A stretch of DNA of 63,860 bases, filler included, from Klebsormidium nitens (Eukaryota > Plantae > Klebsormidiophyceae), in assembly GCA_000708835.1 (NCBI GenBank). It is 5 parts of 5 records of this genome, joined end to end, with 100 filler letters (N's around TTAATTAATTAA, not from the genome) between each part and the next. Parts side by side here need not be neighbours in the genome. Positions count along the whole stretch, not along the records: positions 36,476 to 52,039 come from DF238051.1; 4 more parts are not named here. The stretch is one strand, 5' to 3'. The position numbers were made by a program, and so were the translations under genes. Below are positions 5,501 through 51,940 of the stretch, in pieces; within the stretch, counting starts at the first letter, position 1; each line of letters begins with the position of its first letter. The notes beneath the pieces were generated by a model. It worked only from the letters and a program-made list of their open reading frames with translations, was not told where the DNA came from and did no database searches.

Positions 5501-6141
5501 AACCACGTTTTCAGCATGGCTATAACGTGGTTATTGGTCAAAGAACCACGTTAAATTCTGGTTATGAAACCTGGTTCGCAGCCAAACCTTCCTATGTATT
5601 GTGAGCTGTGCAGTTTTTGGGCCACATGTTCCGCCCCGGCGCAGTCGAAGAACGTCTGGCAATGGGCACGCTGGATTGCCTTGGCCATCGAGAGTATATC
5701 GAGGGGTTGGACCAAGACTACCAGACTACGAACCTCAGCACCTTCGACTGTTCGTTCAGCCGGTTTGGAAAGGTAAGCCACGACTCCGCTGGAAAGTGAC
5801 CCGGGACGTATTTTTAGTGGACGCTCAAGATGTAGTGAAGCTCGATCGCCAGGCTCCTTTCATTGCACACTCCTTGAACGGATGTTACATCAGGGTATGA
5901 CCACCACTGGTGCAGCTTTGAGTTCAGCTCTGGTTCGGCAGTATAATTCGTGAAATTACCTGTCCAACGTCAGTACCGCTCTGTGGGTTGGTGTGATCAA
6001 GGGTTCTGAGACTCAGCGGTCGCGAGCTCGTTGACCCTGATCGAATTGCGTCTTTGTTCTCCTCTGCAGATTGATATTGAATCTATCGCTGACGATGGAG
6101 TCGCGGTACTCGAAGCTGGCGGCCGTGGCATCAAGAGATGA
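2560..6141 (+). CDS. Secreted protein, ~399 aa: signal peptide + PAN/Apple-like Cys domain + Root_cap/VWD-like domain; 7 exons (2560-2727, 3303-3525, 3797-3933, 4168-4407, 4802-5002, 5614-5772, 6070-6141)
   Basis: All junctions are phase-consistent. Exon 2 has CCQRCSLDPFCRYWS..TCILY (PAN-like). Later exons read KDPH...FDFHGEAGQSYCMVTDSRLQLNVRMFG...GTWMYAL...STDVHG|FLGHMFRP...YQTTNLSTFDCSFSRF, which follows the plant Root_cap family pattern (FxFHG..F/YCxVSDxxLxINAxF; VHGVLGxTYRP; YxTxxLxxxDC). The intron 2 donor is probably GC (AG|GCAAGC at 3526). Confidence 0.75.
5428..5582. mobile_element. Intronic quasi-palindromic MITE-like element, copy 1 (AACC/GGTT-rich family)
   Basis: Ends GGCTG...CAGCC; alignable by eye to the copies at 21171 and 34889 (ttaaacatagttgcttacgggctggtt; ctggttatgaaacctggttcgcagcc). 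Confidence 0.5.
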
Positions 6142-35974: not shown

Positions 35975-38900
35975 GTTGTTGGGCGCTTGCAGGACGCTGG
36001 TTGATTTGGACTGTTTGGAAAGAGAGACACGTGCGGAAGCTGAATGGAAGGCTTTTGCGGGTCTGCTGCAACTGGGCTGTGGACGGGGCTGTGGATTGGC
36101 ACTGCTGAGATCGAGAGCGCGCGGCGCAGGAAATTTGACAGGAACAGAAGGTACTGCCGAAGAAGCAAATTTTGCAGTAGTCTCTAGAGGACTGTCAGCT
36201 ACCTAAAGTCCTGAGCTCTAGAAAGGAGGAATGAGGAGGGCTTGGTGACAATGGATATATATTATATAGGTTTTGTGAGAGAACGGATCGCGTCCGGGGC
36301 ATATGTAATATTGAGAAAGTTACTACTGAATGCATGTAGGAGCTGGCGGCCCAACATGAACTTCGTAATCTCCTTNNNNNNNNNNNNNNNNNNNNNNNNN
36401 NNNNNNNNNNNNNNNNNNNTTAATTAATTAANNNNNNNNNNNNNNNNNNNNNNNNNNNNNNNNNNNNNNNNNNNNAGGCTTGCGCTGGGGGCTAGGGCGA
36501 TGGGGCGCGCGGGTCGCCCGATCATTAGTATCATATCACAGCCTCAGTAGCCTTAGACCGTCCGATGCGCACGTAGGCTGCAATCGTACGGCTTCGGGCC
36601 GGGAGGTGATCGCGACATAATTGTCCTGGCAGCTGCAGCGGTCGATGGAGAACGTGGGACTCCATCGACGGCCAAAATCCTCCAGGCTGTCGCGAGAACG
36701 GTTACTTAAAACTCTTGGCTGTAAATGGGTCGCGCGACATGGAACGGGTGGCAAACCCTAATTGGCTGGGGTAACCTAGGTACTGTATGTGAATCTTAGC
36801 CTCGGAAAGTCTGCACTCCAGATCTGCAGTCGACTCTCAACCCTCATTGGCGTGAATCTAACTTTTAAGGACAATTTCACTGTGGTTCAACTTCATTTCT
36901 CCAAATGTTACCTCTTGAGAGCTATTCCCGCCTCTAGCACTCGAGCATAGCCTCCCATGCCAATCTTGCATCGCTTCAAATGATGCCCGAAAGAGTTGAT
37001 CTTCCCATGGACTATTGGAGGGAGCTTAGACATGAGCTCATTTTGAACGGGAGCACGCGGTTCTGCCTTTGTGGCCATTGTGCATCGGCTTTGATGGAAG
37101 AGAGACTCGAGTTTGGGTGGACCTCGGATGTGGAACCGCTCGTGGACTCGGACGAGGAAGAGGAGTTGTTGAGCGAAGAGTTCATCATGTAGATGCATCA
37201 TCTCTCCCGAGCATTGAAGTTGGGTGAGATATATGAATGCCTCAATCTTTGTTGCTTTGATATAGATGTTGGTTGAGAAGTAGGTATCGGGAAATGCTTT
37301 TTTTCAAAGCAACAAATGCCATCTATGCTCGTAAATGCAACTAACCCGAAGAGGACGATGCATAAGTTGCTCGATGAAACGCTCTTTAAATGTGTTATTT
37401 GGTGAGCATTCCTAGCCAAATGTCTTGAGGATTGTTTATGAGTGAGAGGATAGGTTGATTGCGAGAGTCGTCACCTCCGAGATGCATTTTGTCCATCAAA
37501 TTGCTATGGTAAAACTGGAAAATGCAGGTTAGTTGTAACCTGATTGCTGTGTGCTGGTTAGCCTGCTGGTTTGGGATCTGGTTCTGTGGGTTAGCATAGG
37601 GGAACTGAGGTTATGAGCTGCTGGTTAGCCTAGCTCTGAATGCTGGTTAACTGCTGGTCAATGGTTCTTGAAGCAATTTTGCTCTTGTGTTGAAAGTTCG
37701 ATTGAATATGGTGGTTTCTGCCAGATGCAGGCCTGGTAGAGGGTGGAAGCTGAAGAGTAGGAGCCTCTAGTAGGTAAGAAAGCATGGGCCATATGAAAGC
37801 TTGCATGAAAACATGGTGTCTTATTGGTGGAATCTTGAATGGACCACATTGTTCAAAAAGAGCTGAGCCGTTGGTTGGCATGTTGCTTGGTAGCGTCGTT
37901 CGTTTGCATTGCCGCTGACTGGTGCTAGGGCTAGTGCCGATCAGCCTGACGATTTGCTAGCATCGTTTGCTGCTGCGGTATATTGCAGCGGTGTATTTGC
38001 AGTCATTCAAAAGCTTTGCCAACCTGCCATAGATTTAAATCAAAATCATACTTCCTTTGCAGAAGCGTTGCTCGCTGCGGGGGGTCTGGCTTGATAAGGT
38101 GAGTATTCAATGGTGCATTTTACATGCTCACAGTTTGTTTTTATTAGTTGTGACCTCTTCTCATGTGCACTAACTGGCAACTTCTCTGCTGTGACCGTTG
38201 AAGGCAACTTTGCACGCTATAACTTTCTAAGTTGCCAGCTAGCGATGCGCTGCAACCGCAAAACAATTCCGTTCTGTTATGTGACAATATATTTGTAGTT
38301 TCAAACTGCATGCTGTTCCAATTTGCAGATTGTCTGCCAGCCAACCGTCTGCAAAGCGTGCCGCCAGCCCCCAGCGATATGCCCCCAGCCAGCCCGTCAG
38401 CCAGACTGCCACCTCACCACCTCACCAGGTGGGCGACACATGTCTGCAATGCATTCTTCCTCAACAATCTGCCTCAGTCTGCCTTGCAATCTGCCTCAGC
38501 CATGCGCTTGCATCTTCTGTGCATCCTGTTCGTCTGTTCAACAATTCAACAGATAAACTTCTCTTGTGTTCGTGTTTACAAAACATGACTGTGTCTTGTT
38601 CAATTGTACTCATGTCTTTGTTTCATAGGCAACTAGACAGAATATCATGTTGCTGTGCTTTGTCTCATCATCAAATTGTTAACCAAATTATTGTTCTTTG
38701 GACAGATAGTGAGTGACTGGTTGCCACGTGCCATTCTGTCCGCCTGGTAAGCAGTGGGTCTGCAACCGTGAACGACCCCCTGCCCCCCATCGTGTCCGCT
38801 GCACCTGCAAGCCGTTTGCCCCCTGCCCCCCGCAAGCTGCCGCTCGCCCCCTGCCTGCCTGCCCCTCTGCCCCTGCCAGCTCGCCCCGCCACCCCGCCTC

Positions 38901-39519
38901 CCTGCCAGCCAGCTCGCTCGCCCCAGTGGGTTGCTAAGGTGAGCACCACTGCCCGAGGGGCCAACTCTGTCACTCACTTGCATGCTGTCAAAGGTTTTGT
39001 ATCATTGTGTACGTCACTGTTCTGTTGAGCAAGTTGAGCAAGTGTGTGTTTGCAAGTTGAGCACTCAACGTTGCTATTGTGTGACGAGTTATGAGGTGCT
39101 TGCTTTGGCCTGGAAGTAGATTTAAGAATGATCGGACTGCACAACCAACCGAACCAACTTTCTGAAAGACAAATCGTTGTTCCAGCTCGGCAGCCACCAC
39201 CCACCACCAGCAAGCGTCCCCAGCCAGCCAGCCCTCCACCTGCTATCTGCCATCTGCCACCGCTCTCCGAGGTCCCGGCCGCCAACCGCTGTTACCTATT
39301 CGTTGGCCGCCTGCCGCCACCCGCGCTGTGGATACTGTGTGTGAGGTGAGTATCAACCATTTAAGAAGGATGGTGTGTGGTTCATACAAAAGGTCTATCA
39401 CCGAAAGTCACAGTCCGTCAGGAACGGGTCAACAATCGAATCGACTTTGGATGTGTAAATGCGCTGGTTCGAAAAGAGCAAAACATGGAAGCTTTTTATC
39501 ATGCATTGAGGTCGTCGTA

Positions 39520-39601
39520 GCCCTCGGGCATGGTGCTCGAGTTTGACGGCAGGGGTGTACCCGGCAGTTGCTCGAGGATCAAAAAAAGCAGCGCAAGCTG
39601 T
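39520..39601 (+). ncRNA. Candidate structured RNA motif, copy 1
   Basis: GCC-CUCG-GGC hairpin; CUCGAGU/GCUCGAG stem around the invariant core GACGGCAGGGGUGUACCCGGCAGUUG; CAGC-GCAA-GCUG hairpin. Confidence 0.6.
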
Positions 39602-39908
39602 TGACACCTTTGTGTGGTAACTAACTTCGAAGACTTTAGAGTCGAGATCTTTCTGTCTAGAACTTTAGAGCCGGGGTGTAAAGGATTTTAACCGATCATG
39701 GGGTTAAAAGGCCTGTGGTTTTGGCTTGGGTTTGAAAACTGTGTGGCTTTGGCCTTGGCTTTTTATTCCTTAATTTGGCCTTCGACCTTTGAAAATAATG
39801 GCCTTAGACCACTGTGCGAGTTTATATGTGCCCTTCTGTGAGATGAGATTTTGTGGTAGAGCAAATACTTTGAACGGGTCACAAGTTCTGTGGACAAATG
39901 CCAACGTA

Positions 39909-39990
39909 GCCTTCGGGCACGGTGCTCCGTTCTCGACGGCAGGGGTGTACCCGGCAGTTGAACGACATCAAACAAAGCAGCGCAAGCTGT
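39909..39990 (+). ncRNA. Candidate structured RNA motif, copy 2
   Basis: GCC-UUCG-GGC; CGUUC/GAACG stem; invariant core; CAGC-GCAA-GCUG; outer stem AUGCCAAC/GUUGGCGU. Confidence 0.65.
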
Positions 39991-40108
39991 GTTGGCGTCC
40001 TGCGACTTTTGAGACTCTTTTCGTTATCGTTTTTCGTTCTTAAGTCGAGGTCTCCTAGCACACTCTTGCCCGACGCTAATAGTTGTCATTGCTGTATGTA
40101 CAGGCACG

Positions 40109-42007
40109 ATGCCTGAGAGGGCTGAGGTCGTCGCCATGCTTCTCCGCGTGCTGTGGCTCACCGTGTGTGGCGTCACGCGCCTTGTGCGCATCAACAACAA
40201 CACGACGCGCCGGAAGAAGGACGGCAACCTCATGATGCAGAAGCAGAACTCCCGCAAGGGCTCCGACCAGAGGGTCGCCGAGTTCCTGGGCTGTGACGGC
40301 GCCGTAGTGGTTGGCGTGGAGGTCGTCGGCAACCAGCTGGCGATGTTGCTCCGGAATGCGGGTGGCGAGTTCCGGGTTCTGCGGTGGAACCTGCGGCAGG
40401 GCGGGGCGCTCGACTGGTTCGAGTACGATGACGGCCGTTTCGCCGAGTACCCTGCGAGCTCTGAGCGGCGCAACGCGGCTAACTTCGAGCTCGCCGGCCT
40501 CCACCTCCCCCCCGAGTGGAAGGGCAAGGACATCCGGCTGGTCGAGGTCGATTGCACGTCAACGCCTAACCAAGCGGAGTGGGAGCTGCGCGAAACCTTC
40601 CCAAACCTCGGCAACGTCCCCTTCTCCCCTGCCCCCGGCTGGTTCGCCCGCTACCGGGGAGTCCCCAACATGCTGCTGGACCCGAACGGCTGGGTGGAGG
40701 CGGTCGTTGCCTGCGCGCTCGTCGTCGCCGCCCGCTACCCGGACCGCCCCGTCGTCGTCTGGATCGGGCGCTCGACCGTGTGGGAGGCCACCGGCTTCAA
40801 GAGCAAGGGGGACCTGCTCATCCGCAACTTCATGGCGACAGGGCGCCCGCAGTGCCTGACCATGGGGGAGCTGGTCGCCGACGGTCCGATCGCCGTGATG
40901 CACCTGTGCTGGATCGCGTACCTTTTCCTGTACGAGGAGCTGGCGTATGCCTACTGGTAAGCCATTGCACGTGTCACCTGTGGGTGGTATGGTTTCTCGT
41001 GTGGCATATGCCCTGTCGTTGTCGTGCCTTATGTGAGACAAGCCAAAGGATGTTGCCACCTTCGCACTGCTGTCCGTCAAGGCTCCTCTGACTTTGAACG
41101 TTTCGCTCTAACAATTCACGTTGTGGTTGTCGCAGGTACGATTTGACCAAGTTCAACGCCCCCAAGATCATGAACTATGCCATCAACGTCCTGCTGGTCT
41201 TCCAGAAGAAGGACTGCGTCCAGCTGTATCATGTGAGCTCACCAAGCTTCATCGAGCTTCAGCAAACATCCAATCAATGCTTGCTTTGTGTGGACTTGCG
41301 TGTGACTTTTAGGACGAACTTCGGTTTCTAATACTGCTTCGTTTCCATGTGCGCAGCCTGGCAAGTATCGGCACGACCAATTCTGGGCGCCAAAGGCCGT
41401 GCTCGAGACGGCGGAGTGGAAGCACATGGTGAAGCACTTTGGGTGGAGGGCCAAGCCCCCGTTGGGGGCCAACGCCATCGACGGCTTCTGCGCCAAGGTC
41501 GGCGTGGGCCCCCTCGCTTGGCACCAGCACATCGACGTGGTCAACATTCCAATGGCGAACCGTGCGCTGGACCTGCTCCGGGGCCTTCGCGGGGAGGGAG
41601 GGACGGTGAAGAAGCTGCCCAAGGTGGCGGACCGGCCGGCCATCATTGCTGAGCTCGGACGGGCGCGACGGGAGGAGGAGGCACGGCGGGATGCGGCCGA
41701 GGCGACGGGGGAGTCTTCCGGGGACGAGACCGCCGACGGCCGCGCTGGGTCGGAGTCGGCCGCGGGCCCGAGCGGGAGCGGGCCGAGCGTGTCCGCGGCG
41801 GCGCCGGCGGCCGGGAAGCGCAAGAGGAGGCACAAGAACCGCAAGAACTATGGCAACCGGCTAGAGAGGATCCATGCGTCGTACACGAACGGCACTTGGT
41901 GGCAGCGTGCGCTCGACATAATGAGCGCGCTAGACAGGGACGGGTTGGGTGGGATGTTGCCGGATAAGAAGTTCGAGCTAGCGTTGTCGCACATGCAGAA
42001 GAGTTGA
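40109..42007 (+). CDS. Orphan 3-exon gene, ~531 aa (40109-40956, 41136-41232, 41357-42007), with acidic/basic low-complexity C-terminal region and a possible NLS (KRKRRHK)
   Basis: Long GC3-rich open frames joined by phase-consistent GT-AG introns (TG|G and phase 0). No domain recognised. An acceptor at 40102 suggests an upstream exon. Confidence 0.75.
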
Positions 42008-42058
42008 ATAACACATTGAATTGCAACATCCTGTTATATCGTGATTGTTTCAATTCAA

Positions 42059-42141
42059 GCCCTCGGGCGCGGTACTCTAACTTCGACGGCAGGGGTGTAC
42101 CCGGCAGTTGGTTAGACTCCAAAGCATGCGGCGCGAGCTGT
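42059..42141 (+). ncRNA. Candidate structured RNA motif, copy 3 (about 50 nt after the orphan gene stop codon)
   Basis: GCC-CUCG-GGC; UCUAACU/GGUUAGA stem; invariant core; CGGC-GCGA-GCUG. Confidence 0.6.
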
Positions 42142-42223
42142 AACGTGGCCCATTGCATTCGAAAGTTCGTTGATTCGAGATAATTGTTTGAGGCTTGCTT
42201 CTCTTGATCAAATTGCCGTTGAA

Positions 42224-42306
42224 GCCTTCGGGCGCGGTGCTCCGAGTTTGACGGCAGGGGTGTACCCGGCAGTTGCTCGGCCATCAACGAAAGCAGCGGA
42301 AGCTGT
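42224..42306 (+). ncRNA. Candidate structured RNA motif, copy 4
   Basis: GCC-UUCG-GGC; CCGAGU/GCUCGG stem; invariant core; CAGC-GGAA-GCUG. Confidence 0.65.
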
Positions 42307-42583
42307 CTTGGCATTGATCTTTGAGCGGCAAACGTAGCGCTACCTAAGTGTTTCATTGTGATCAAATAGCAAAGGTATAGAGCTCGTTGAACATACACTC
42401 ATTGAGCGCTTGCAAAGCATCACATTACGCAAAAACGGCCTAGTTTTTCAATGTACAATCGCACACATATGTTCCCAATGTTAGCGACTTTTGTCTAGGC
42501 GCTCTAATAATCGTTCAGTTTCATACCCCTACTGTCTTCGCTATGCAACCAAAACCATCATTATGCGACAAATGATGCATGTC

Positions 42584-42914
42584 TTATATCGTCTTACGAC
42601 TACCAAACTTGCCACGGATAGTCGCCCACCATCTCCTGCATCCTGTGGGCTTGCCAAAGCACCAATTATATCCCTTCTTAGACGTAGCATCGTGCATCTC
42701 TATGTACGACTCCTCGACCGAATTTGCCTCCTGCTTGCTAAGCCCCTCCTGTAGGACCGTCAAATGGAAGAATTCTTTGAAAGGAGCGAATTTCTCCGCA
42801 TCCTTCCGCATCCTAAAAGGAGGACTCTTCGAGTGCGCCCTGAACCTAGCCTTAGGATCCTTGGACTGGCCGATGTACACCCGGCCGTTCACCACGTTCT
42901 TGATCATGTAGACG
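42584..42914 (-). CDS. GIY-YIG endonuclease domain (alternative terminal exon or read-through extension)
   Basis: (S/G)VYMIKNVVNGRVYIGQSKDPKARFRAH...EANSVEESYIEMHDATSKKGYN: GIY-x10-YIG motif, catalytic Arg (R..H), Glu helix and GYN motif. Confidence 0.85.
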
Positions 42915-42928
42915 CTGGTGCCATGTAG

Positions 42929-45367
42929 TCAATCCGCCTTGGACGCCTTCTTGGAGCCGGCCGCCTTCTTGCCGCCGGCCGGCTTCTTGGCGCTTCTGCA
43001 GGGAGAAACAAAGTCGTTTCAGAACTACGTCATGCGATCGAGCGTCTAATCACCAATCAGACAAAGTCCACATTTATTAATCAGGTGTTGAGATCAAACA
43101 TGTCCTGTTCAATTCGATCGGTCAACACGAAGGCCAAAAAACATCCGAAGTGTGCTCGACACAAAGTACCGCCACACGATTGCTTCACAATGGTGCCACA
43201 TGCAGAAGAGCCCGGACCGGAACTCACCCCATGGTCAGCTGGGACAGGGTCAGGTCGTCGTCGATGGGATCGTCGTCCAGCGCCGCCAGGTTCTCGGCGA
43301 CGCTCCCGCCAATGTCGAAGTCGGCCGCGTCGCCCATGTCATCAGCGAAGTAGTCCTCGTCGGGCTCGTCGTCAAAGTTCCTGCAAGCCAACAACNNNNN
43401 NNNNNNNNNNNNNNNNNNNNNNNNNNNNNNNNNNNNNNNNNNNNNNNNNNNNNNNNNNNNNNNNNNNNNNNNNNNNNNNNNNNNNNNNNNNNNNNNNNNN
43501 NNNNNNNNNNNNNNNNNNNNNNNNNNNNNNNNNNNNNNNNNNNNNNNNNNNNNNNNNNNNNNNNNNNNNNNNNNNNNNNNNNNNNNNNNNNNNNNNNNNN
43601 NNNNNNNNNNNNNNNNNNNNNNNNNNNNNNNNNNNNNNNNNNNNNNNNNNNNNNNNNNNNNNNNNNNNNNNNNNNNNNNNNNNNNNNNNNNNNNNNNNNG
43701 GGGGCCAGGGGGGCGTTGCGCTGCAAGCTCGAGAGCAAGCCGGAGCCACATGCAAGCTTGAGATCAAGCTTGAGCCACAAAACACGGTTCCATGTCCTAA
43801 CCAGTCGTCCTCACCTGGGGTCGCGGTTCGCCGGGTCCTCCTGCAGCTTCTCCAGAATGGACTCCGCCTGCTCGTTGGTGAGGTCCTTCCAGTCGTCAGG
43901 CCCGATGCTGTACTCCATGGAGAGACTTGCCGCCTGAAAGAAGAAGCAGACAAAGTTTGAGCAACTAGAAACGACCAGAGCTCAGGACCCCACCAGATTG
44001 CAGCACCTGAGATGCATGTAAGCCGCACATGACCGTTCGTGACAAGCTTGCCTTAGCGCGCGGTGTGAATGGTAGGNNNNNNNNNNNNNNNNNNNNNNNN
44101 NNNNNNNNNNNNNNNNNNNNNNNNNNNNNNNNNNNNNNNNNNNNNNNNNNNNNNNNNNNNNNNNNNNNNNNNNNNNNNNNNNNNNNNNNNNNNNNNNNNN
44201 NNNNNNNNNNNNNNNNNNNNNNNNNNNNNNNNNNNNNNNNNNNNNNNNNNNNNNNNNNNNNNNNNNNNNNNNNNNNNNNNNNNNNNNNNNNNNNNNNNNN
44301 NNNNNNNNNNNNNNNNNNNNNNNNNNNNNNNNNNNNNNNNNNNNNNNNNNNNNNNNNNNNNNNNNNNNNNNNNNNNNNNNNNNNNNNNNNNNNNNNNNNN
44401 NNNNNNNNNNNNNNNNNNNNNNNNNNNNNNNNNNNNNNNNNNNNNNNNNNNNNNNNNNNNNNNNNNNNNNNNNNNNNNNNNNNNNNNNNNNNNNNNNNNN
44501 NNNNNNNNNNNNNNNNNNNNNNNNNNNNNNNNNNNNNNNNNNNNNNNNNNNNNNNNNNNNNNNNNNNNNNNNNNNNNNNNNNNNNNNNNNNNNNNNNNNN
44601 NNNNNNNNNNNNNNNNNNNNNNNNNNNNNNNNNNNNNNNNNNNNNNNNNNNNNNNNNNNNNNNNNNNNNNNNNNNNNNNNNNNNNNNNNNNNNNNNNNNN
44701 NNNNNNNNNNNNNNNNNNNNNNNNNNNNNNNNNNNNNNNNNNNNNNNNNNNNNNNNNNNNNNNNNNNNNNNNNNNNNNNNNNNNNNNNNNNNNNNNNNNN
44801 NNNNNNNNNTTTCGACCACTCACCTGCCACACACGAATTCCGGAGGTGTGGTCGACCCACAGACGGATGGCAGCCTTCTGAGAGATGTTATGGTCGTAGG
44901 CAACGCCGAGCTGGTCCAGGAGCCACTTCAGGTCGCCTGTCGACGGAGAGATGCAATCGATGTTAAAGCGAGCCGTTGCGGGAGGGATACCACTTCACGG
45001 CTAGCGCAACAGGATACCTCGCATGTATGCAGGGCCAAGCAGAGGGATCATAGGCAATGATTCGACACATGGAGTCACTTCACTCACCGGAGGCCGGGTC
45101 CTCGTTGTGCTTGGCGTAGTAGCGCTCCCTGACCTTCTTCTGGTTGGTCAGAAAGTCGTCAACGGACCTCCACCCGCCAGTGAACTTCTTCTTGTACGTG
45201 CTCGGCTTTGCTCCGGTGAGATTTGCCAGCTTGCACTGCTTCTCGTTCAGGACAACAGGTCCGGAGGAGTCACGGCCGCGCTTGCGGTCGTTCCTGTTGG
45301 GAAGCTTCTTCTTGGCCTCCTCCTTGAGCATCGCAAAAAGATTCTTCTGCGTCATCTTGGCGGCCAT
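42929..45367 (-). CDS. Multi-exon gene of unknown function (Lys-rich N-terminus, Asp-rich segment, Lys/Ala tail); exons 45367-45088, 44936-44824, [gap], 43933-43815, 43380-43228, 42995-42929
   Basis: Canonical GTGAG donors and YAG acceptors with consistent phases. Two N gaps may hide further exons. Confidence 0.65.
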
Positions 45368-46350: not shown

Positions 46351-49300
46351 NGACGGGACGGCACACGAGACAGCGCAACATACAGCAGACCGGGACAAAA
46401 CGCTTTTTTGACGTCCACGATGACCTTCCCACGAAGAGTCGCGCCCTGAGACCTGTGTGCGGTGATTGCATACCCGAGCATCAGAGGAAAAGTCGCCTTG
46501 AAATATCGCCTCTCATTGTGATAGAGGTTCTTTACTGAGGAGCGCCTGACCGCAACCTCTTTGCCGCCGTGGCAAGACATTTTCAGACGAATCTCATCCC
46601 GCATATCATTTTCAAGGCGCACAGAAGTAACCTCTGCGGTGGCCCCATTGGCAGCACCGTTTTCTAGATCGAGGTTCTGCGTAATCATCACCTTGGCACC
46701 GACCGCGACCCTTTGCAGCTGGTGAAAGTAAGAATCGGACAACCACTCTTTCAGATCGCGTTCGGCAGAGGCGTTGGTGACAACACTGACCTGCTTGAGG
46801 CGGTCGCCGTCCAAGAAAATGCAAGACGCGCAGAAGTTGTTGTAGTCGACCACTTGATCGCGATGGCTGCACAGGATTGTGGTGTCAGCGTCAAAAGTTT
46901 TCAGTGCTGTGGTCTTAGGGACGAAACACGGCCCCAAATAGTGGTTGATCTCATCTTTAGTCGGCTTGCGGTGCCGAATGATGCACAAGAATTCAAGAAG
47001 CCCTGGATCATCGTGGCGCATCGACCTAGTCAAGGCATGACACAGTGCAGAAGACCAATGGACAGATCTGCTTATGTGACACCGCTGGCAGACCTCGTCG
47101 TCGGGAAGGTCGTGCCTGCATACCGCAGGTAACTGAGCGTGGTCACCAAAAAGAATGAGCAGCTTGTTTTCCAGTGGGTCCCTCTTTCTAGTGACTTGCT
47201 GAAGGCGAAAGAAAATCAGGTCGAGTGTGGAGCAATCCATCATAGAGAACTCGTCACCGAGAAAGACATCGGCTTTGAGCAGGACATCATGCTGGAAGCT
47301 ACCAGGATACAAAGGAGAAAGGTAGGTCGACTTTGCAGGGATCGAAAAGCGGTTATGAGCAGTCACCGCACCAGAGCCTATGCGGGTTGCGGCGGATCCA
47401 GTGGTTGCAAACAAGCACACATTGAGAGACTGGGAATAAAACAGCGCGTGCAGAAACCGAAGCAGATAAGATTTCCCACAGCCAGGAGGCCCTGAGATGA
47501 CGTGCAAACCCCGAGGACGTTGCCTTATTGCCTCTACCAACGCAAGCTGCTCGACATTTAGAGTAAAGGAATCTGGAGACGGGGGAGGCTCGACGGAATC
47601 AAACAAATCAGACACGGTCTCCGGTTGAACAGCCGTGGGCCCATGAACAGAGGGCTTGACGCGAAGAAGGGGCTCGAACTCACCACTCTGGAGCGGACGC
47701 TTCTGCAGGATCTTGTTCAGGAGCTGGGCGCGTTGCTCAGAGGCGATCAGGTTCCGATCTGCATAGGATTGGAGATGCGTCTCGATGTCAGCTTCGTCCT
47801 TCACAATTCCCGCGGAGCTGGCATTCAATGAAGTAGGACCCCGAAGTGTTCTCAGGACTGAGAAGATCTGCTTCGAATCGGAACCTGACCGCACCGAGGA
47901 GGACATTGAAAAAATAGGCCTCCATCTGATGCGCCGGGTGAAAGTCACTGAATCTGACAAGGCCGCACTGGCTGCTGCGCTCGTATACAAAGTTTCCAAA
48001 GCCGTCCACACCAAGCGACTGCTTTCGGACCTTCTTATCTTTCGACAGGACAAATCCTCGAAAGTATTCGAAAAACGTGACGTTTTCAAGGGCAGAGGGA
48101 CGAGCGCAGTACTTCTCAATGGGGTGCACAATGACAGCAGATCTTGTGGAGGGGACTACAACCTTTGTTCTGAGAAACGGAGGCGCAGAGTCAATCGGAG
48201 TCACAGAGTCACTCCTGTCCACAATCGAAATCTCCATCACAGACATTGCAGCTTCGCAAGGGGAGACCGGCTGAGAAAGACAGAAGGCAGAGACAGCACG
48301 CAGCTGAGAATCTGAGAGGCCATGCAAACCCAGCGACTTGGCAGCTTGCGGATCTAGGTTGAGGGATCCAGAAGGCTCGCACTTCATTGCATACTTCAGC
48401 AGATAGTGAGACCAGGCATCGCTAGTCACTCTCTGAATGTTCAAATGTGCACCCCAGAGTAGGAGCAACACCGGGTGATACGGTACAACATATCGGTCCT
48501 GATGTCGCGGTCTGTAATAAATCCAACGCATCCGATCAGGACAGAAGGCGGCAGCGGAGCTTGGGTGCGGCTTCCATGGGAAACCGTACTTACATGGCTT
48601 GTCGTCTAGGAGGCAGAGACCAGGTCTGCAACGATGACGCTGCTTTCTCAGGACGTGCGCCTGAAGTTGGGCCTTCAGAGGGTCGTCAAAACGCTCGAAT
48701 CTTTTGGAGATCGGATCAAACTTCCCTGGAATAAAAGCGACAATCTCGTCAGTCACACGTACCACGTCTTCAGGCGCTACCCAGAGGATGATATGAGCAT
48801 GAGGGCTACCTCGTGACTGCATCTCGTAGCGCGTAACGTAGTGGAGAACCCTGCCAAGAACGCCATTTTTAGGGTCAAGAATAAATGTCTTCATGAACGT
48901 TCTCAGTCGGCTGTGAAACAACTTCAAGCACTCCACTGGAGCATCTTTCCAGGTGGCAGAGGAGTTGAAGCGGTCAAGAAATGCCTCCAAGTCATCGAAC
49001 TCCACCCAGCGCAACTCAGTCACCTCGTCTGCAGTCAAAGTCAAAAGAAACTTGGAAGGCCCCACTGATCGACCATACTGAGAAGATCTTTTAAGTTCTT
49101 CCGAAACCAGGCAGGAGAGCCAGCAACACACGAAGGTACCTTGTACTTTAAAACGTGCTTCATGACATCATCCAGAGACGCGAGAGGATTCTTCTTCTTG
49201 TAAGCAAGAATGGCGCGATCATACGCAATGGTTCTGGTCGTGTTCATCAAGACAACAGCTTTGCGAACCTGATACATCAGAAGCAAGTAAGGGAGGTAAA

Positions 49301-50411
49301 GTGTGAAAGGCGAGAAAAGAGCTTTCATGCGGGTGCGAAGGTATGTTGGCAGGGAGATCTTGGAGTCATAAGCACCAGAGCCAAAGGGGAAGAGGAAAGG
49401 GAACAAGGCGGTTTCCAAAGTGACCTTCTCATCGTCAATAGGACGCACAGGAAGCCCACACACGTTGGTGGTCAGCCGCTTCACAACATAGCCATTCCGA
49501 GTGACCAGAGACCCCGTGTCAAAAGCTGACGACTTGTTCAGTGAGGCATTCTGGGATATACCGTCAAGATTGGGGAAAGAAACCGTGTAAAGTAAACTCT
49601 GAACATCGTCTGCATCTATGCTCATGGACTGAAAAGGACCACGACCTCGGTTTGCCGACACGATGGATTCGATCGCCGACGAAGGCAAAACAGGGACACC
49701 AAATCGAGGATGCGGAGACTCAAGCATCGTAAGGTAGTTCTGAAAGAGAGAGTTCTGTTCTAGATTCAAAGCCAGCACGCTTTTCAAAAGGTCAGGGATA
49801 TCATCGAGGTTTGTGCACTCTCCGAGATTCGTGTTCCAAGCGATGAGAGGTCCGTCCAGAATGGATGAGTCTTCAAGCACACCGTGCGCATAGCCTTTGA
49901 GCTTTTTGATCATCTCCAAGCTTGCATCAACAAGGCCAAGCATTTGCAAGTGCAAAGGGTGAAGTGTGAGAAGCGACCGAACGTAAGCAGGCGAGAACAT
50001 TACTGCGTAGTTTTGCCAGGCATACGGTTTGTCCTTGCAAGCAGAACAAGCATACCACAGTCCGGCTTCGTTACGAGTGAATTCCTCCAAAAGAACGTTG
50101 CATAGAGCATATGGAGAAATTTCAGAACGAGGATTCACTGTGTGGAGCTTTGCATCAAAACCTCCAAGCGCAGTATGACCACAAAAAGCACAGCATGTTA
50201 CTCTCGTGAAAGCCTGACGGCAAAGAGCCCTCCAACCAGCCAGAGTCGTTGACAATGTGTTCCAATGTCGACAGAGCACATCTGATTCGGTGCGCTGAGG
50301 CGCAACGGCCATAACTTCCACAGAACCACAGTAGCTGAAGCGAATACATAGGAGATGGTAATGAACGAAGAGGTGAAATCTCACCTGAAGCGGAGGTTTT
50401 GATGAGGTCAA
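46351..50411 (-). mobile_element. Helitron RepHel (HUH Rep + PIF1-family SF1B helicase), interrupted by two single-base frameshifts (~49045, ~47810)
   Basis: LETALFPFLFPFG; GLPSFFLTLTAD (after frameshift repair); YEMQSRGSPHAHIILW (HUH); VVPYHPVLLLLWGAHLNIQ; YLLKYAMK; helicase GPPGCGKS, DEFSM, LFGDHAQLPAV, KVMITQNLDLENGAANG, FPLMLGYAITAHRSQGATL, GLLYVALSRV. Confidence 0.95.
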
Positions 50412-51016
50412 CGCAGATGTGGCTTCGAAGCCTGAGAAGTGCGGCAGTAGCCAAACACCAATCGGCCCGGAGAACCTCAGCGACTGTACAAGTGGGCAAG
50501 CTCAGGTTCGGCGAAGCAAAGTACAGACGCCGCGCGACCAACAACCTGCATCGGATATTGCACTGAGAGTTAGTATTCTAAGTCTGGGTTTTGTGAAAAT
50601 ATTTCAGGTCGTATCTCAGCATTCTAACGGCGGTCCGGACGAGGTATTCCTTTTTTAAAAACGTGATGCTTGAACAGAACATCCAACCAACTCTCAATGA
50701 GCAAGGCCTTTTCTTCCTTGGAATCTACGTATGACAAATCTTGAATGTAATGAAAGCATAGTGCAAGGTTGTCCACAGCTTGAAGATTGTACTGGCGGCC
50801 ATATCCAACGCAGTAAGAAACAGCGAAGAGAAGAGTACGAACAATAATCGAAGGTGAGCCAAAGGCTCCAACCTCAAAATTGCGTCTGTGCTGAGCTCGA
50901 AAGAAGTTTACATCGTGCTTGTTGGACCAAGTCAGAGCAGCGTCGAGCAATGCGGAGAACGTCTCATCTTTCACAACCGCACGTGGCAGAGCCATAGGTG
51001 TGTGAACACTCACCAA
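50377..51016 (-). pseudogene. Upstream, possibly spliced or frameshifted N-terminal coding blocks of the Helitron
   Basis: 130-aa ORF 51016-50624 and an exon-like block 50547-50377, co-oriented and abutting RepHel; could not be joined in phase. Confidence 0.35.
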
Positions 51017-51589: not shown

Positions 51590-51940
51590 ATTTTTTACCT
51601 TTGGTGCGATTCCTTTTTTGCATGTTACCAGTCGAAATGTATGGTACACCAGAGAATATATATGTGGTGCGACTCTCTGCTATGTGGCTTCAAACATAGC
51701 TTCAGTCGAACGGGTTTTAACACCGAAAATTCGATGAAGTGCAGAATTTTATAGACTGGTGCGCGACTGAAACTTTGACACCATGACGCGAAATCGGTGC
51801 GACTCTGCGCGAATTGCTTTCTGTCGAACGGAACATACATCGAAACATAGATTGGTGTAGAAATATTCTATATTAAGGTTCGACTCGGAGTTTTGACACC
51901 GTTCGGCAGTCTGCAAAAAAACGTTATTATTGACACACTA
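51590..51940. repeat. Short dispersed subterminal-type motifs (TGGTGCGAC, TTGACAC) upstream of RepHel
   Basis: tggtgcgatt 51602, tggtgcgact 51666, tggtgcgcgact 51757, cggtgcgact 51796; ttgacac 51775, 51893, 51930. Confidence 0.4.

Follow-up and report, generated by a model that had tools for sequence, protein, structure and literature searches.

Small structured RNAs with covarying stems occur as direct repeats in mobile elements, as exemplified by the hammerhead ribozymes of Penelope-like elements and retrozymes. ENE elements (triple-helix, stability) and CTE/RTE elements (export) of retroviral and transposon RNAs are folded cis-acting modules, often duplicated, that are found in transposon 3' untranslated regions (3'UTRs) and work through recognition instead of catalysis. 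Eukaryotic thiamine pyrophosphate (TPP) riboswitches use 5' intron and 3'UTR positions. In Helitron2 elements, omega/fRNAs are made from the 3'UTR of Fanzor mRNAs, including that of a Klebsormidium nitens Fanzor (PMC10530073), and Helitron2 DNA itself bears terminal hairpins with compensatory changes and carries RepHel in either orientation (PMC3627910). The present analysis concerns a motif that occurs four times between positions 39506 and 42317 of a 63,860-nt stretch of K. nitens DNA (the window; assembly GCA_000708835.1), in the part taken from DF238051.1. The copies lie in the pre-mRNA of an accessory gene of a Helitron and make up a real family of structured RNAs that is under selection, has not been described before and is known to date from a single Klebsormidium Helitron family. 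The reading tentatively favoured is that of a conserved, cis-acting recognition or regulatory RNA module of ∼100 nt.

The motif resembles each of these systems in part. Like the hammerheads, it is a small structured RNA repeated directly in a mobile element, but it lacks the hammerhead core, its host is a DNA transposon, and its copies occupy the intron and 3'UTR of a spliced mRNA instead of terminal repeats. The ENE and CTE/RTE elements may offer the most fitting functional analogy; the motif differs from them in having no U-rich or CTE-type internal loops, in forming a four-way junction, and in that half of its copies are intronic. With the TPP riboswitch it shares a 5' intron position near a splice site, a 3'UTR position, an invariant core and a possible alternative fold, yet it does not match the TPP model, its host is a transposon gene, and no alternative isoforms are seen in RNA contigs. 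The omega/fRNAs of TnpB and Fanzor are likewise structured RNAs from the 3'UTR of an accessory gene of an algal Helitron (PMC10530073; PMC3627910), whereas the present locus has no Fanzor or TnpB gene and the motif is a much smaller RNA that lacks a guide and occurs in four copies. The terminal hairpins of Helitrons and Helitron2 share the host element class and the compensatory changes, but they are short, single, placed at the ends and read as DNA, in contrast with a multi-helix motif of 100 nt that is internal, transcribed and favoured in the RNA sense.

Four copies with an invariant core

The 26-nt core GACGGCAGGGGTGTACCCGGCAGTTG has four exact matches in the window, at 39545, 39935, 42085 and 42250, all on the plus strand. 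No match is found in 100 dinucleotide shuffles, even when up to three mismatches are allowed, which confirms the four copies with an invariant core proposed by an earlier reading of the sequence alone (the sequence-only reading). The full motif spans ∼105 nt and is present in four copies, all in the sense orientation of the host gene. Copy 1 (39506–39612, core 39545–39570; 104.9 bits with covariance model (CM) R1) and copy 2 (39895–40001, core 39935–39960; 111.6 bits) are located in a spliced intron of the 5'UTR, copy 2 lying ∼100 nt before its 3' splice site. Copy 3 (42045–42152, core 42085–42110; 104.7 bits) starts ∼40 nt past the stop codon in the 3'UTR, and copy 4 (42210–42317, core 42250–42275; 116.1 bits), also in the 3'UTR, is the final conserved segment ahead of a convergent GIY-YIG gene. 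Variation among the four copies is strongly uneven: none of the 26 core columns varies, as against 45 of 102 columns overall (hypergeometric P ∼1e-8), with 16 of 16 variable columns in the outer stem P1 and 14 of 16 in the basal stem and bulge. Copy 1 resembles a duplicate of the copy 4 type, the two having a 37-nt identical stretch in common.

Searches of databases and literature return no described relative. Over the 15.5-kb piece that holds the motif, Rfam 15 cmscan gives no match at E<=1, and at E<=10 a scan of 286 nt gives only an 11-bit chance match to a bacterial small RNA. No match is obtained to the Rfam ribozymes (hammerhead, HDV-like, twister, twister-sister, hatchet, pistol, hairpin, VS and hovlinc) or to the TPP and other Rfam riboswitch aptamer models, and neither the sequence nor the consensus fold contains the U-rich internal loop of an ENE, which lies between G-C stems and clamps an A-rich tract. 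The core is absent from IMG/VR, its search in JGI metagenomes yields three chance matches inside bacterial coding DNA, and a structured pattern run against 185,579 prokaryotic genomes yields one chance match of 14.9 bits. The core sequence was not found in the literature searched, and the papers searched for Klebsormidium ribozymes or Helitrons contain nothing relevant. A tRNA or tRNA-like gene was considered and discarded, as ARAGORN reports 0 genes and Rfam no tRNA match; merely the topology of P1 on the P4 hairpin is reminiscent of one. What the motif does display are the features of a generic conserved cis-acting structured RNA, namely transcription, a strand-specific compensatory fold and conservation above neutral.

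A consensus fold of four helices

The alignment comprises ten copies: the four of the window, three (k1–k3) from L006, which is the K. nitens KFL_013190010 homologue on contig DF238268.1, one from the Logan contig L010 and two (a and b) from the Logan contig L012. The ten copies amount to only ∼4 independent stem types. Alignments of four and then of ten copies lead to one consensus fold of four helices, each recovered by RNAalifold. P1 is the outer stem, exemplified in copy 2 by ATGCCAAC/GTTGGCGT. P2 is a short GCC-YUCG-GGC hairpin that takes the form cUUCGg in the best-kept copies. P3 is a long irregular hairpin closed by GGUG/YAUC, with a basal stem of 5–7 bp that is different in every copy type, above which come a 2-nt pyrimidine bulge and the invariant distal 26 nt. 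This invariant tip consists of GAC/GUY, G-A, G-C, C-G and A-G, followed by GGG/CCC capped by GUGUA, such that two single G-A mismatches flank two G-C pairs. An A-rich linker connects P3 to P4, a GCAGC-GNRA-GCUGU hairpin that abuts the 3' strand of P1 and stacks on P1. The junction strands vary, J1/2 being GUA, GAA, CAA or UAU and J3/4 being A-rich but variable.

The variable stems maintain pairing through different sequences in the different copies (CTCGAGT/GCTCGAG, CGTTC/GAACG, TCTAACT/GGTTAGA and CCGAGT/GCTCGG), and the P4 loops of copies 1–4 (GCAA, GCAA, GCGA and GGAA) vary within GNRA only. Across the ten copies, with P1 included, standard pairs occupy 85.7% of 342 cells, compared with 30–44% when the partners are slid by 1–3 columns, and nine pairs have changed on both sides. 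An evolutionary intermediate is preserved in k1 and L010, which carry CCGTTC opposite GCTCGG with two mismatches, while in window copy 2 the stem CCGTTC/GAACG is fully compensated. Copy 3, k2 and L012a have the stem TCTAAyT/GGTTAGA in common. The minimum free energy (MFE) fold of copy 1 is the consensus fold, at -47 kcal/mol. Single-sequence folding z scores are modest (-3.0, -2.2, -0.4 and -0.4 for copies 1–4), so the case for the fold rests on the comparative evidence. As to strand, the ten copies contain 44 G-U cells and 13 A-C cells. Since A-C cells are the G-U pairs of the other strand, this asymmetry, together with the GNRA and YUCG loops, favours the plus strand and hence RNA. For each of the four copies, moreover, the RNA fold of the plus strand is more stable than that of the minus strand.

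Most of the structural proposals of the sequence-only reading survive. The flank pairings, the pyrimidine bulge, the GAC/GTT element and the YTCG and GNRA hairpins are all seen in the sequence, and its preference for a plus-strand RNA agrees with the G-U asymmetry, the loop identities and the fold stability. An outer stem is present in copies 1, 2 and 4, as it had stated; copy 3 has only a weak one in the window, and the counterparts of copy 3 in L006 and L012 have the outer stem CCAC/GTGG. The suggested GGTGCT-GGCA pseudoknot does not hold, as it is broken in the copy 3 types (GGTACT or GGTCCT), and the local GGUG/YAUC helix that closes the long hairpin fits better. With the Rfam null and the compensatory pairs, both the absence of a known ribozyme or riboswitch family and the broader description of the motif as an undescribed, covarying structured element on the plus strand are upheld.

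A second helix competes with part of the consensus fold. Columns 15–28 can pair with columns 33–46 to give a 12-bp hairpin with a UGCU loop (39909–39940 in copy 2), in which the 5' half of P2 and J2/3 pair with the basal stem, the bulge and GACGGC. The competing hairpin cannot form together with P2 and the base of P3. Across the ten copies, 90% of its cells can pair, compared with 33–55% in slid controls, and the segments common to the two folds are invariant. In copies 2 and 4 it is the predicted MFE structure, within 1–2.5 kcal/mol of the consensus fold or better. In k3 and L012b, the preference for it is strong. Its covariation in the ten copies is not above that of shuffles, and it contains three consecutive G-U pairs.

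Position of the copies in the host transcript

The RNA evidence for splicing and coverage is in the form of assembled contigs, taken from four runs that belong to four studies. The splice joint 39343>40102 (cut +2) is present in all four runs at mRNA depth and corresponds to a GT..AG intron of 758 nt in the 5'UTR (39346–40103, plus strand). Because this first joint is used at full mRNA depth, copies 1 and 2 lie inside the 5'UTR intron. The host gene (40109–42007, plus strand), supported by splice joints and a spliced open reading frame (ORF), starts at an ATG at 40109 with an in-frame TGA just upstream, contains GT..AG introns at 40957–41135 and 41233–41356, and encodes an orphan protein of 531 residues. 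From the coding sequence, contigs continue into and beyond copies 3 and 4, as far as 42418 in X19 record 12 and 42500 in X9 record 21, and they cross both copies at the depth of the coding sequence, that is, at full mRNA depth. Copy 4 is found whole in at least 20 RNA runs, under two organism labels and in at least seven studies. The motif is thus carried in RNA contigs, and the outcome that its copies are never transcribed is not borne out. No alternative splice joints are found in the RNA contigs.

Several irregularities of coverage surround the copies. Intron coverage (4–6x in three runs) begins inside copy 1 (39538–39610) in all four runs, and the intron upstream, at 39407–39513, has zero depth. 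Such a start could mean that an RNA has its 5' end at the motif or that transcription is initiated internally, or it could be an artefact of assembly or filtering; the places where contigs begin at copy 1 coincide with breaks that repeats induce in the assembly graph, and coverage holes prove nothing. In run X10, the depth steps down after copy 4. In run X5, one contig joins 42242 back to 39538 through the 37-nt common stretch; a circular or recombined RNA was considered for this joint, which is most likely a de Bruijn chimera instead. Modules of the copy 3 type are directly followed by TGTAA (window 42141–42146, L006 ∼5998–6004, L012 ∼990–996), the green-algal poly(A) signal, which hints at a poly(A) site just past copy 3.

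Conservation among relatives

The relatives reproduce the arrangement of the copies. L006 has three diverged copies in the same layout: the splice acceptor and ATG follow one of them at ∼106 nt, and the other two come past the stop. L010 has a single copy upstream of exon 1, and L012 has two between exon 3 and the minus-strand GIY-YIG gene. The counterparts of copy 2 are L006:3546-3653 and L010:717-824. Those of copy 3 (L006:5906-6013 and L012:898-1005) are 77–80% identical, and those of copy 4 (L006:6057-6164 and L012:1048-1149) are 84–88% identical. In a three-way alignment of the 3'UTR, the segment that leads from the stop to copy 3, the spacer that separates the copies and the DNA past copy 4 are 15–39% identical and therefore unalignable, as compared with 67–70% at the end of the coding sequence. 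Synonymous divergence (dS) between the window and L012 lineages is 0.64–1.0, with ratios of nonsynonymous to synonymous divergence (dN/dS) of 0.11 in the GIY-YIG gene and 0.34 in exon 3. A motif that remains 77–88% identical among unalignable spacers at a dS of 0.6–1.0 indicates strong purifying selection, and to judge from these alignments the motif has evolved several-fold slower than synonymous sites. In L010, the reading frame is split into separate ORFs and the copy carries core substitutions that break pairs. L012 copy a has pair-breaking core substitutions too, although the ORFs seen in L012 are intact.

The boundaries of homology at the motif ends are where constraint ends. A unit bounded by ribozymes was considered as an explanation and rejected, given that the sequence becomes homologous to L012 again at the GIY-YIG gene and that L006 diverges at a probable Copia long terminal repeat (LTR). 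In L006, the sequence from 6168, right past k3, starts with TG and a Copia gag follows ∼930 nt on; this interruption is a probable insertion of an LTR retrotransposon (Copia). In distant loci (L004, L005, L007, L008, L009 and L011), a search for repeats shared upstream and downstream of the gene finds no analogue of the motif. Three of these loci have a different tandem pair of 100–220-nt repeats at the equivalent place in the 3'UTR (L011:4182-4541, L005:10077-10507 and L007:3214-3404), and such tandem pairs downstream of the host gene may be analogous elements.

A proposed cis-acting module and its alternatives

The favoured reading, held tentatively, is that the motif is a conserved recognition or regulatory module of ∼100 nt acting in cis in the pre-mRNA of a Klebsormidium Helitron accessory gene. 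The four-way junction would serve as a scaffold that presents the invariant P3 hairpin, and a host or transposon factor would recognise this hairpin on the nascent transcript. Binding would determine how the transposon mRNA is processed, how stable it is or how it is exported. As half of the copies are removed with the intron, such action would be nuclear and co-transcriptional; candidate actions are on splicing near the acceptor ∼100 nt downstream, on 3'-end formation beside the convergent gene, on stability and on export. The conserved competing 5' hairpin suggests that the module may toggle between two folds. In small ribozymes, invariant residues usually line the junction. An invariant helical hairpin combined with variable junction strands is more in keeping with a hairpin that is recognised than with a catalytic core.

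A number of observations weigh against this reading. The covariation statistics are weak, with ∼4 independent stem types, three outside lineages and sequences that are related. For copies 3 and 4 the folding z scores do not reach significance, and the variable (basal) stem of L012 copy b is without its 3' strand, which has been lost. The motif is absent, in CM searches with filters off, from the distant family members L004, L005, L007 and L011, so that it is not essential to the Helitron family; the same search also finds none in L008 and L009, more distant homologues of the host gene, and a CM search finds none in the GIY-YIG contigs L014, L015 and L016. Assembled RNA contigs are unable to show minor cleaved species. 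The invariant helix could also represent a double-stranded DNA site. Finally, the mechanism, comprising factor binding and nuclear action, is one that we infer.

It is unlikely that the motif is a new class of functional RNA with an activity of its own, either a self-cleaving ribozyme or a ligand-responsive switch, that controls the processing of the Helitron accessory transcript. A ribozyme of a new class, cutting at a fixed site so as to trim the intron or the 3'UTR or to promote RNA polymerase II termination between the convergent genes, has in its favour that the fold is compact, with several helices and with covarying stems around an invariant core, and that it recurs in tandem within a mobile element; hints may also be seen in the intron coverage that begins inside copy 1 past a stretch of zero depth and in the drop past copy 4 in X10. 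Its probability is nonetheless low: Rfam 15 has no ribozyme match even at E<=10, the hammerhead CUGAnGA/GAAA core is absent from the sequence, the contig starts at copy 1 fall on repeat-induced graph breaks, and the junction strands, the usual location of small-ribozyme active sites, are variable. The mRNA is abundant though its 3'UTR holds two copies, and contigs cross both at coding-sequence depth, which speaks against efficient cleavage. The self-cleaving ribozyme that the sequence-only reading had put forward as a candidate meets no sign of cleavage in the contigs, and the tandem ribozymes that it saw as flanking a unit are located in the 5'UTR intron and 3'UTR of one mRNA. Also improbable is a riboswitch-like switch, in which the junction and the competing 5' hairpin alternate to control the 3' splice site in the intron copies and 3'-end formation in the 3'UTR copies. 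The mutually exclusive hairpin, its pairability above slid controls, its close or better energies and the invariance of the segments that take part in both folds speak for such a switch, and the positions of the motif, in an intron ∼100 nt from the acceptor and in the 3'UTR, match the usage of TPP riboswitches. The alternative helix, however, has no covariation beyond shuffles and includes the run of three G-U pairs, the RNA contigs contain no alternative splice joints, there is neither a match to TPP or another riboswitch nor a ligand candidate, and the most invariant part is a distal hairpin and not a junction pocket.

The other explanations place the function outside the host mRNA or dispense with it. 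A signal in single-stranded DNA, in which the plus-strand DNA folds on being unwound during rolling-circle transposition and tells RepHel or an accessory nuclease where to pause, terminate or load, is given a small probability. C(GNNA)G loops are stable in DNA too, and the invariant 26-bp helix is readable as DNA. The motif resides in a Helitron family with RepHel 4–8 kb away, and the terminal hairpins of Helitron2 with their compensatory changes provide a precedent (PMC3627910). The copies, though, are internal to a transcription unit and have no CTRR end or asymmetric terminal inverted repeat associated with them, the strand that folds is antisense to RepHel and forms many G-U(T) pairs, the cUUCGg and GNRA-restricted loops are hallmarks of RNA, known Helitron signals are single short hairpins unlike four 100-nt four-way junctions, and more distant family members lack the motif. 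The DNA hairpin signal that the sequence-only reading had kept as its alternative is accordingly weakened by the internal copies and the G-U pairs, while the location in a Helitron family speaks for it. Improbable as well is a released small RNA, with the module excised from the intron or 3'UTR and acting in trans, for example as a cofactor of a transposon enzyme. The closed P1 stem does delimit a discrete unit of ∼100 nt, P1 on P4 forms a coaxial arm of 12–13 bp like the acceptor/T arm of a tRNA, copies in an intron and a UTR are in keeping with processed small RNAs, and Helitron2 elements offer a precedent of structured RNAs derived from a 3'UTR (PMC10530073); against this, the motif has no unpaired variable guide segment, Pfam finds no TnpB or Fanzor domain in the locus, ARAGORN finds no tRNA-like gene, and the sequence contains no small nucleolar RNA boxes or RNA polymerase III signals. 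It is very improbable that the motif is a functionless short repeat, a miniature mobile or duplicated sequence that folds by chance. The likeness of copy 1 to a duplicate of the copy 4 type, through their 37-nt identity, and the restriction of the motif so far to one genus would fit such a repeat, but not the orthologous conservation of 77–88% beside unalignable flanks at this dS, nor the compensatory changes, the strict sense orientation and an invariant core beside hypervariable stems.

The host protein and the Helitron neighbourhood

The 531-residue host protein begins MPERAEV, and its homologues start with MPE, MTE or MSE; only 14 homologues are found among 1.8 billion representatives. An AlphaFold model of the first 283 residues (predicted local distance difference test score, pLDDT, 69) gives consistent Foldseek matches to glycosylases of the Fpg/MutM/Nei/NEIL type, including 57 PDB matches at E<=1e-3; also matched are AFDB clusters that bear the name Fpg or AP lyase. 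Pfam, PDB profile and Atlas searches find no link to Fpg at the sequence level, and the relationship is one predicted by fold only. The N-terminal Met-Pro-Glu corresponds to the catalytic start of the Fpg/MutM/Nei family. Among the papers searched, an Fpg/Nei-like accessory gene in a Helitron appears to be unreported. In exon 2, at 41193, five nucleotides (CTGGT, a tandem duplication) are inserted in the contigs of every one of the four runs; the window does not have this insertion, and it is also lacking in L006. With it, the reading frame would be shifted and the protein would stop near residue 372. Either strains differ here and the expressed allele is a pseudogene, or the assembly of the window is in error by 5 nt.

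Collinearity of the window with L012 and the more distant JGI contig L011 extends through the host gene, the GIY-YIG gene, three further exons and RepHel. This collinearity identifies the host gene as an accessory gene of a multi-gene Helitron family and not a chance neighbour, and gives the mobile-element origin proposed earlier its concrete form. The GIY-YIG domain exon of the convergent accessory gene is at 42584–42907 on the minus strand (Pfam PF01541, E 1e-8) and is collinear in L011 and L012. RepHel, with Rep/Helitron_like_N and PIF1 helicase domains (PF14214, PF23343 and PF05970), lies on the minus strand at approximately 46354–50995, likewise collinear in L011 and L012; its Pfam Rep and PIF1 helicase matches cover 46355–49131 and beyond, and a masked run of N interrupts it on the 3' side. 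A GIY-YIG domain has been reported by HELIANO in a Helentron-type family of Sphagnum (PMC11417382). Between the Lys-rich linker and the GIY-YIG domain, the convergent gene has an in-frame TGA followed by CTA (GAT TGA CTA, ∼42908–42916, minus strand). This stop is kept in all six diverged copies, namely the window, L011, L012, L014 (a spliced, cDNA-like contig), L015 and L016, and looks like a programmed UGA-CUA stop-codon readthrough that would fuse the N-terminal domain to the GIY-YIG nuclease.

The search for end signals did not locate the true ends of the element. Helitron terminal hairpins are expected 10–30 nt from the 3' end, with CTRR after them in Helitron1 or an asymmetric terminal inverted repeat ahead of them in Helitron2. 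No consistent CTRR follows the motif on either strand, with the copies internal to the transcription unit, and no inverted repeats are found in 36476–43396. Upstream of the RepHel start, the interval 51603–51885 (plus strand) contains four to five GGTGCGACT-like repeats together with short inverted repeats, which may be subterminal binding sites near the other end of the element; the GGTGCGACT-like repeats number 6 in the whole window against 3.5 expected and are not above chance.

Implications for Helitrons and streptophyte algae

Folded RNA modules are known in transposon transcripts, and a DNA transposon is an unexpected host class for one. Helitrons are DNA transposons thought to need DNA-level signals only; if the cis-acting module is borne out, they share with retroelements and viruses the use of RNA-level control modules. 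Were the motif a ligand-responsive switch, TPP would no longer be the only riboswitch class of eukaryotes. The Fpg/Nei-like gene, so assigned by predicted fold, and the GIY-YIG gene add to the known cargo of Helitrons. The motif itself is a candidate new RNA family in a streptophyte alga, a lineage with few known structured non-coding RNAs.

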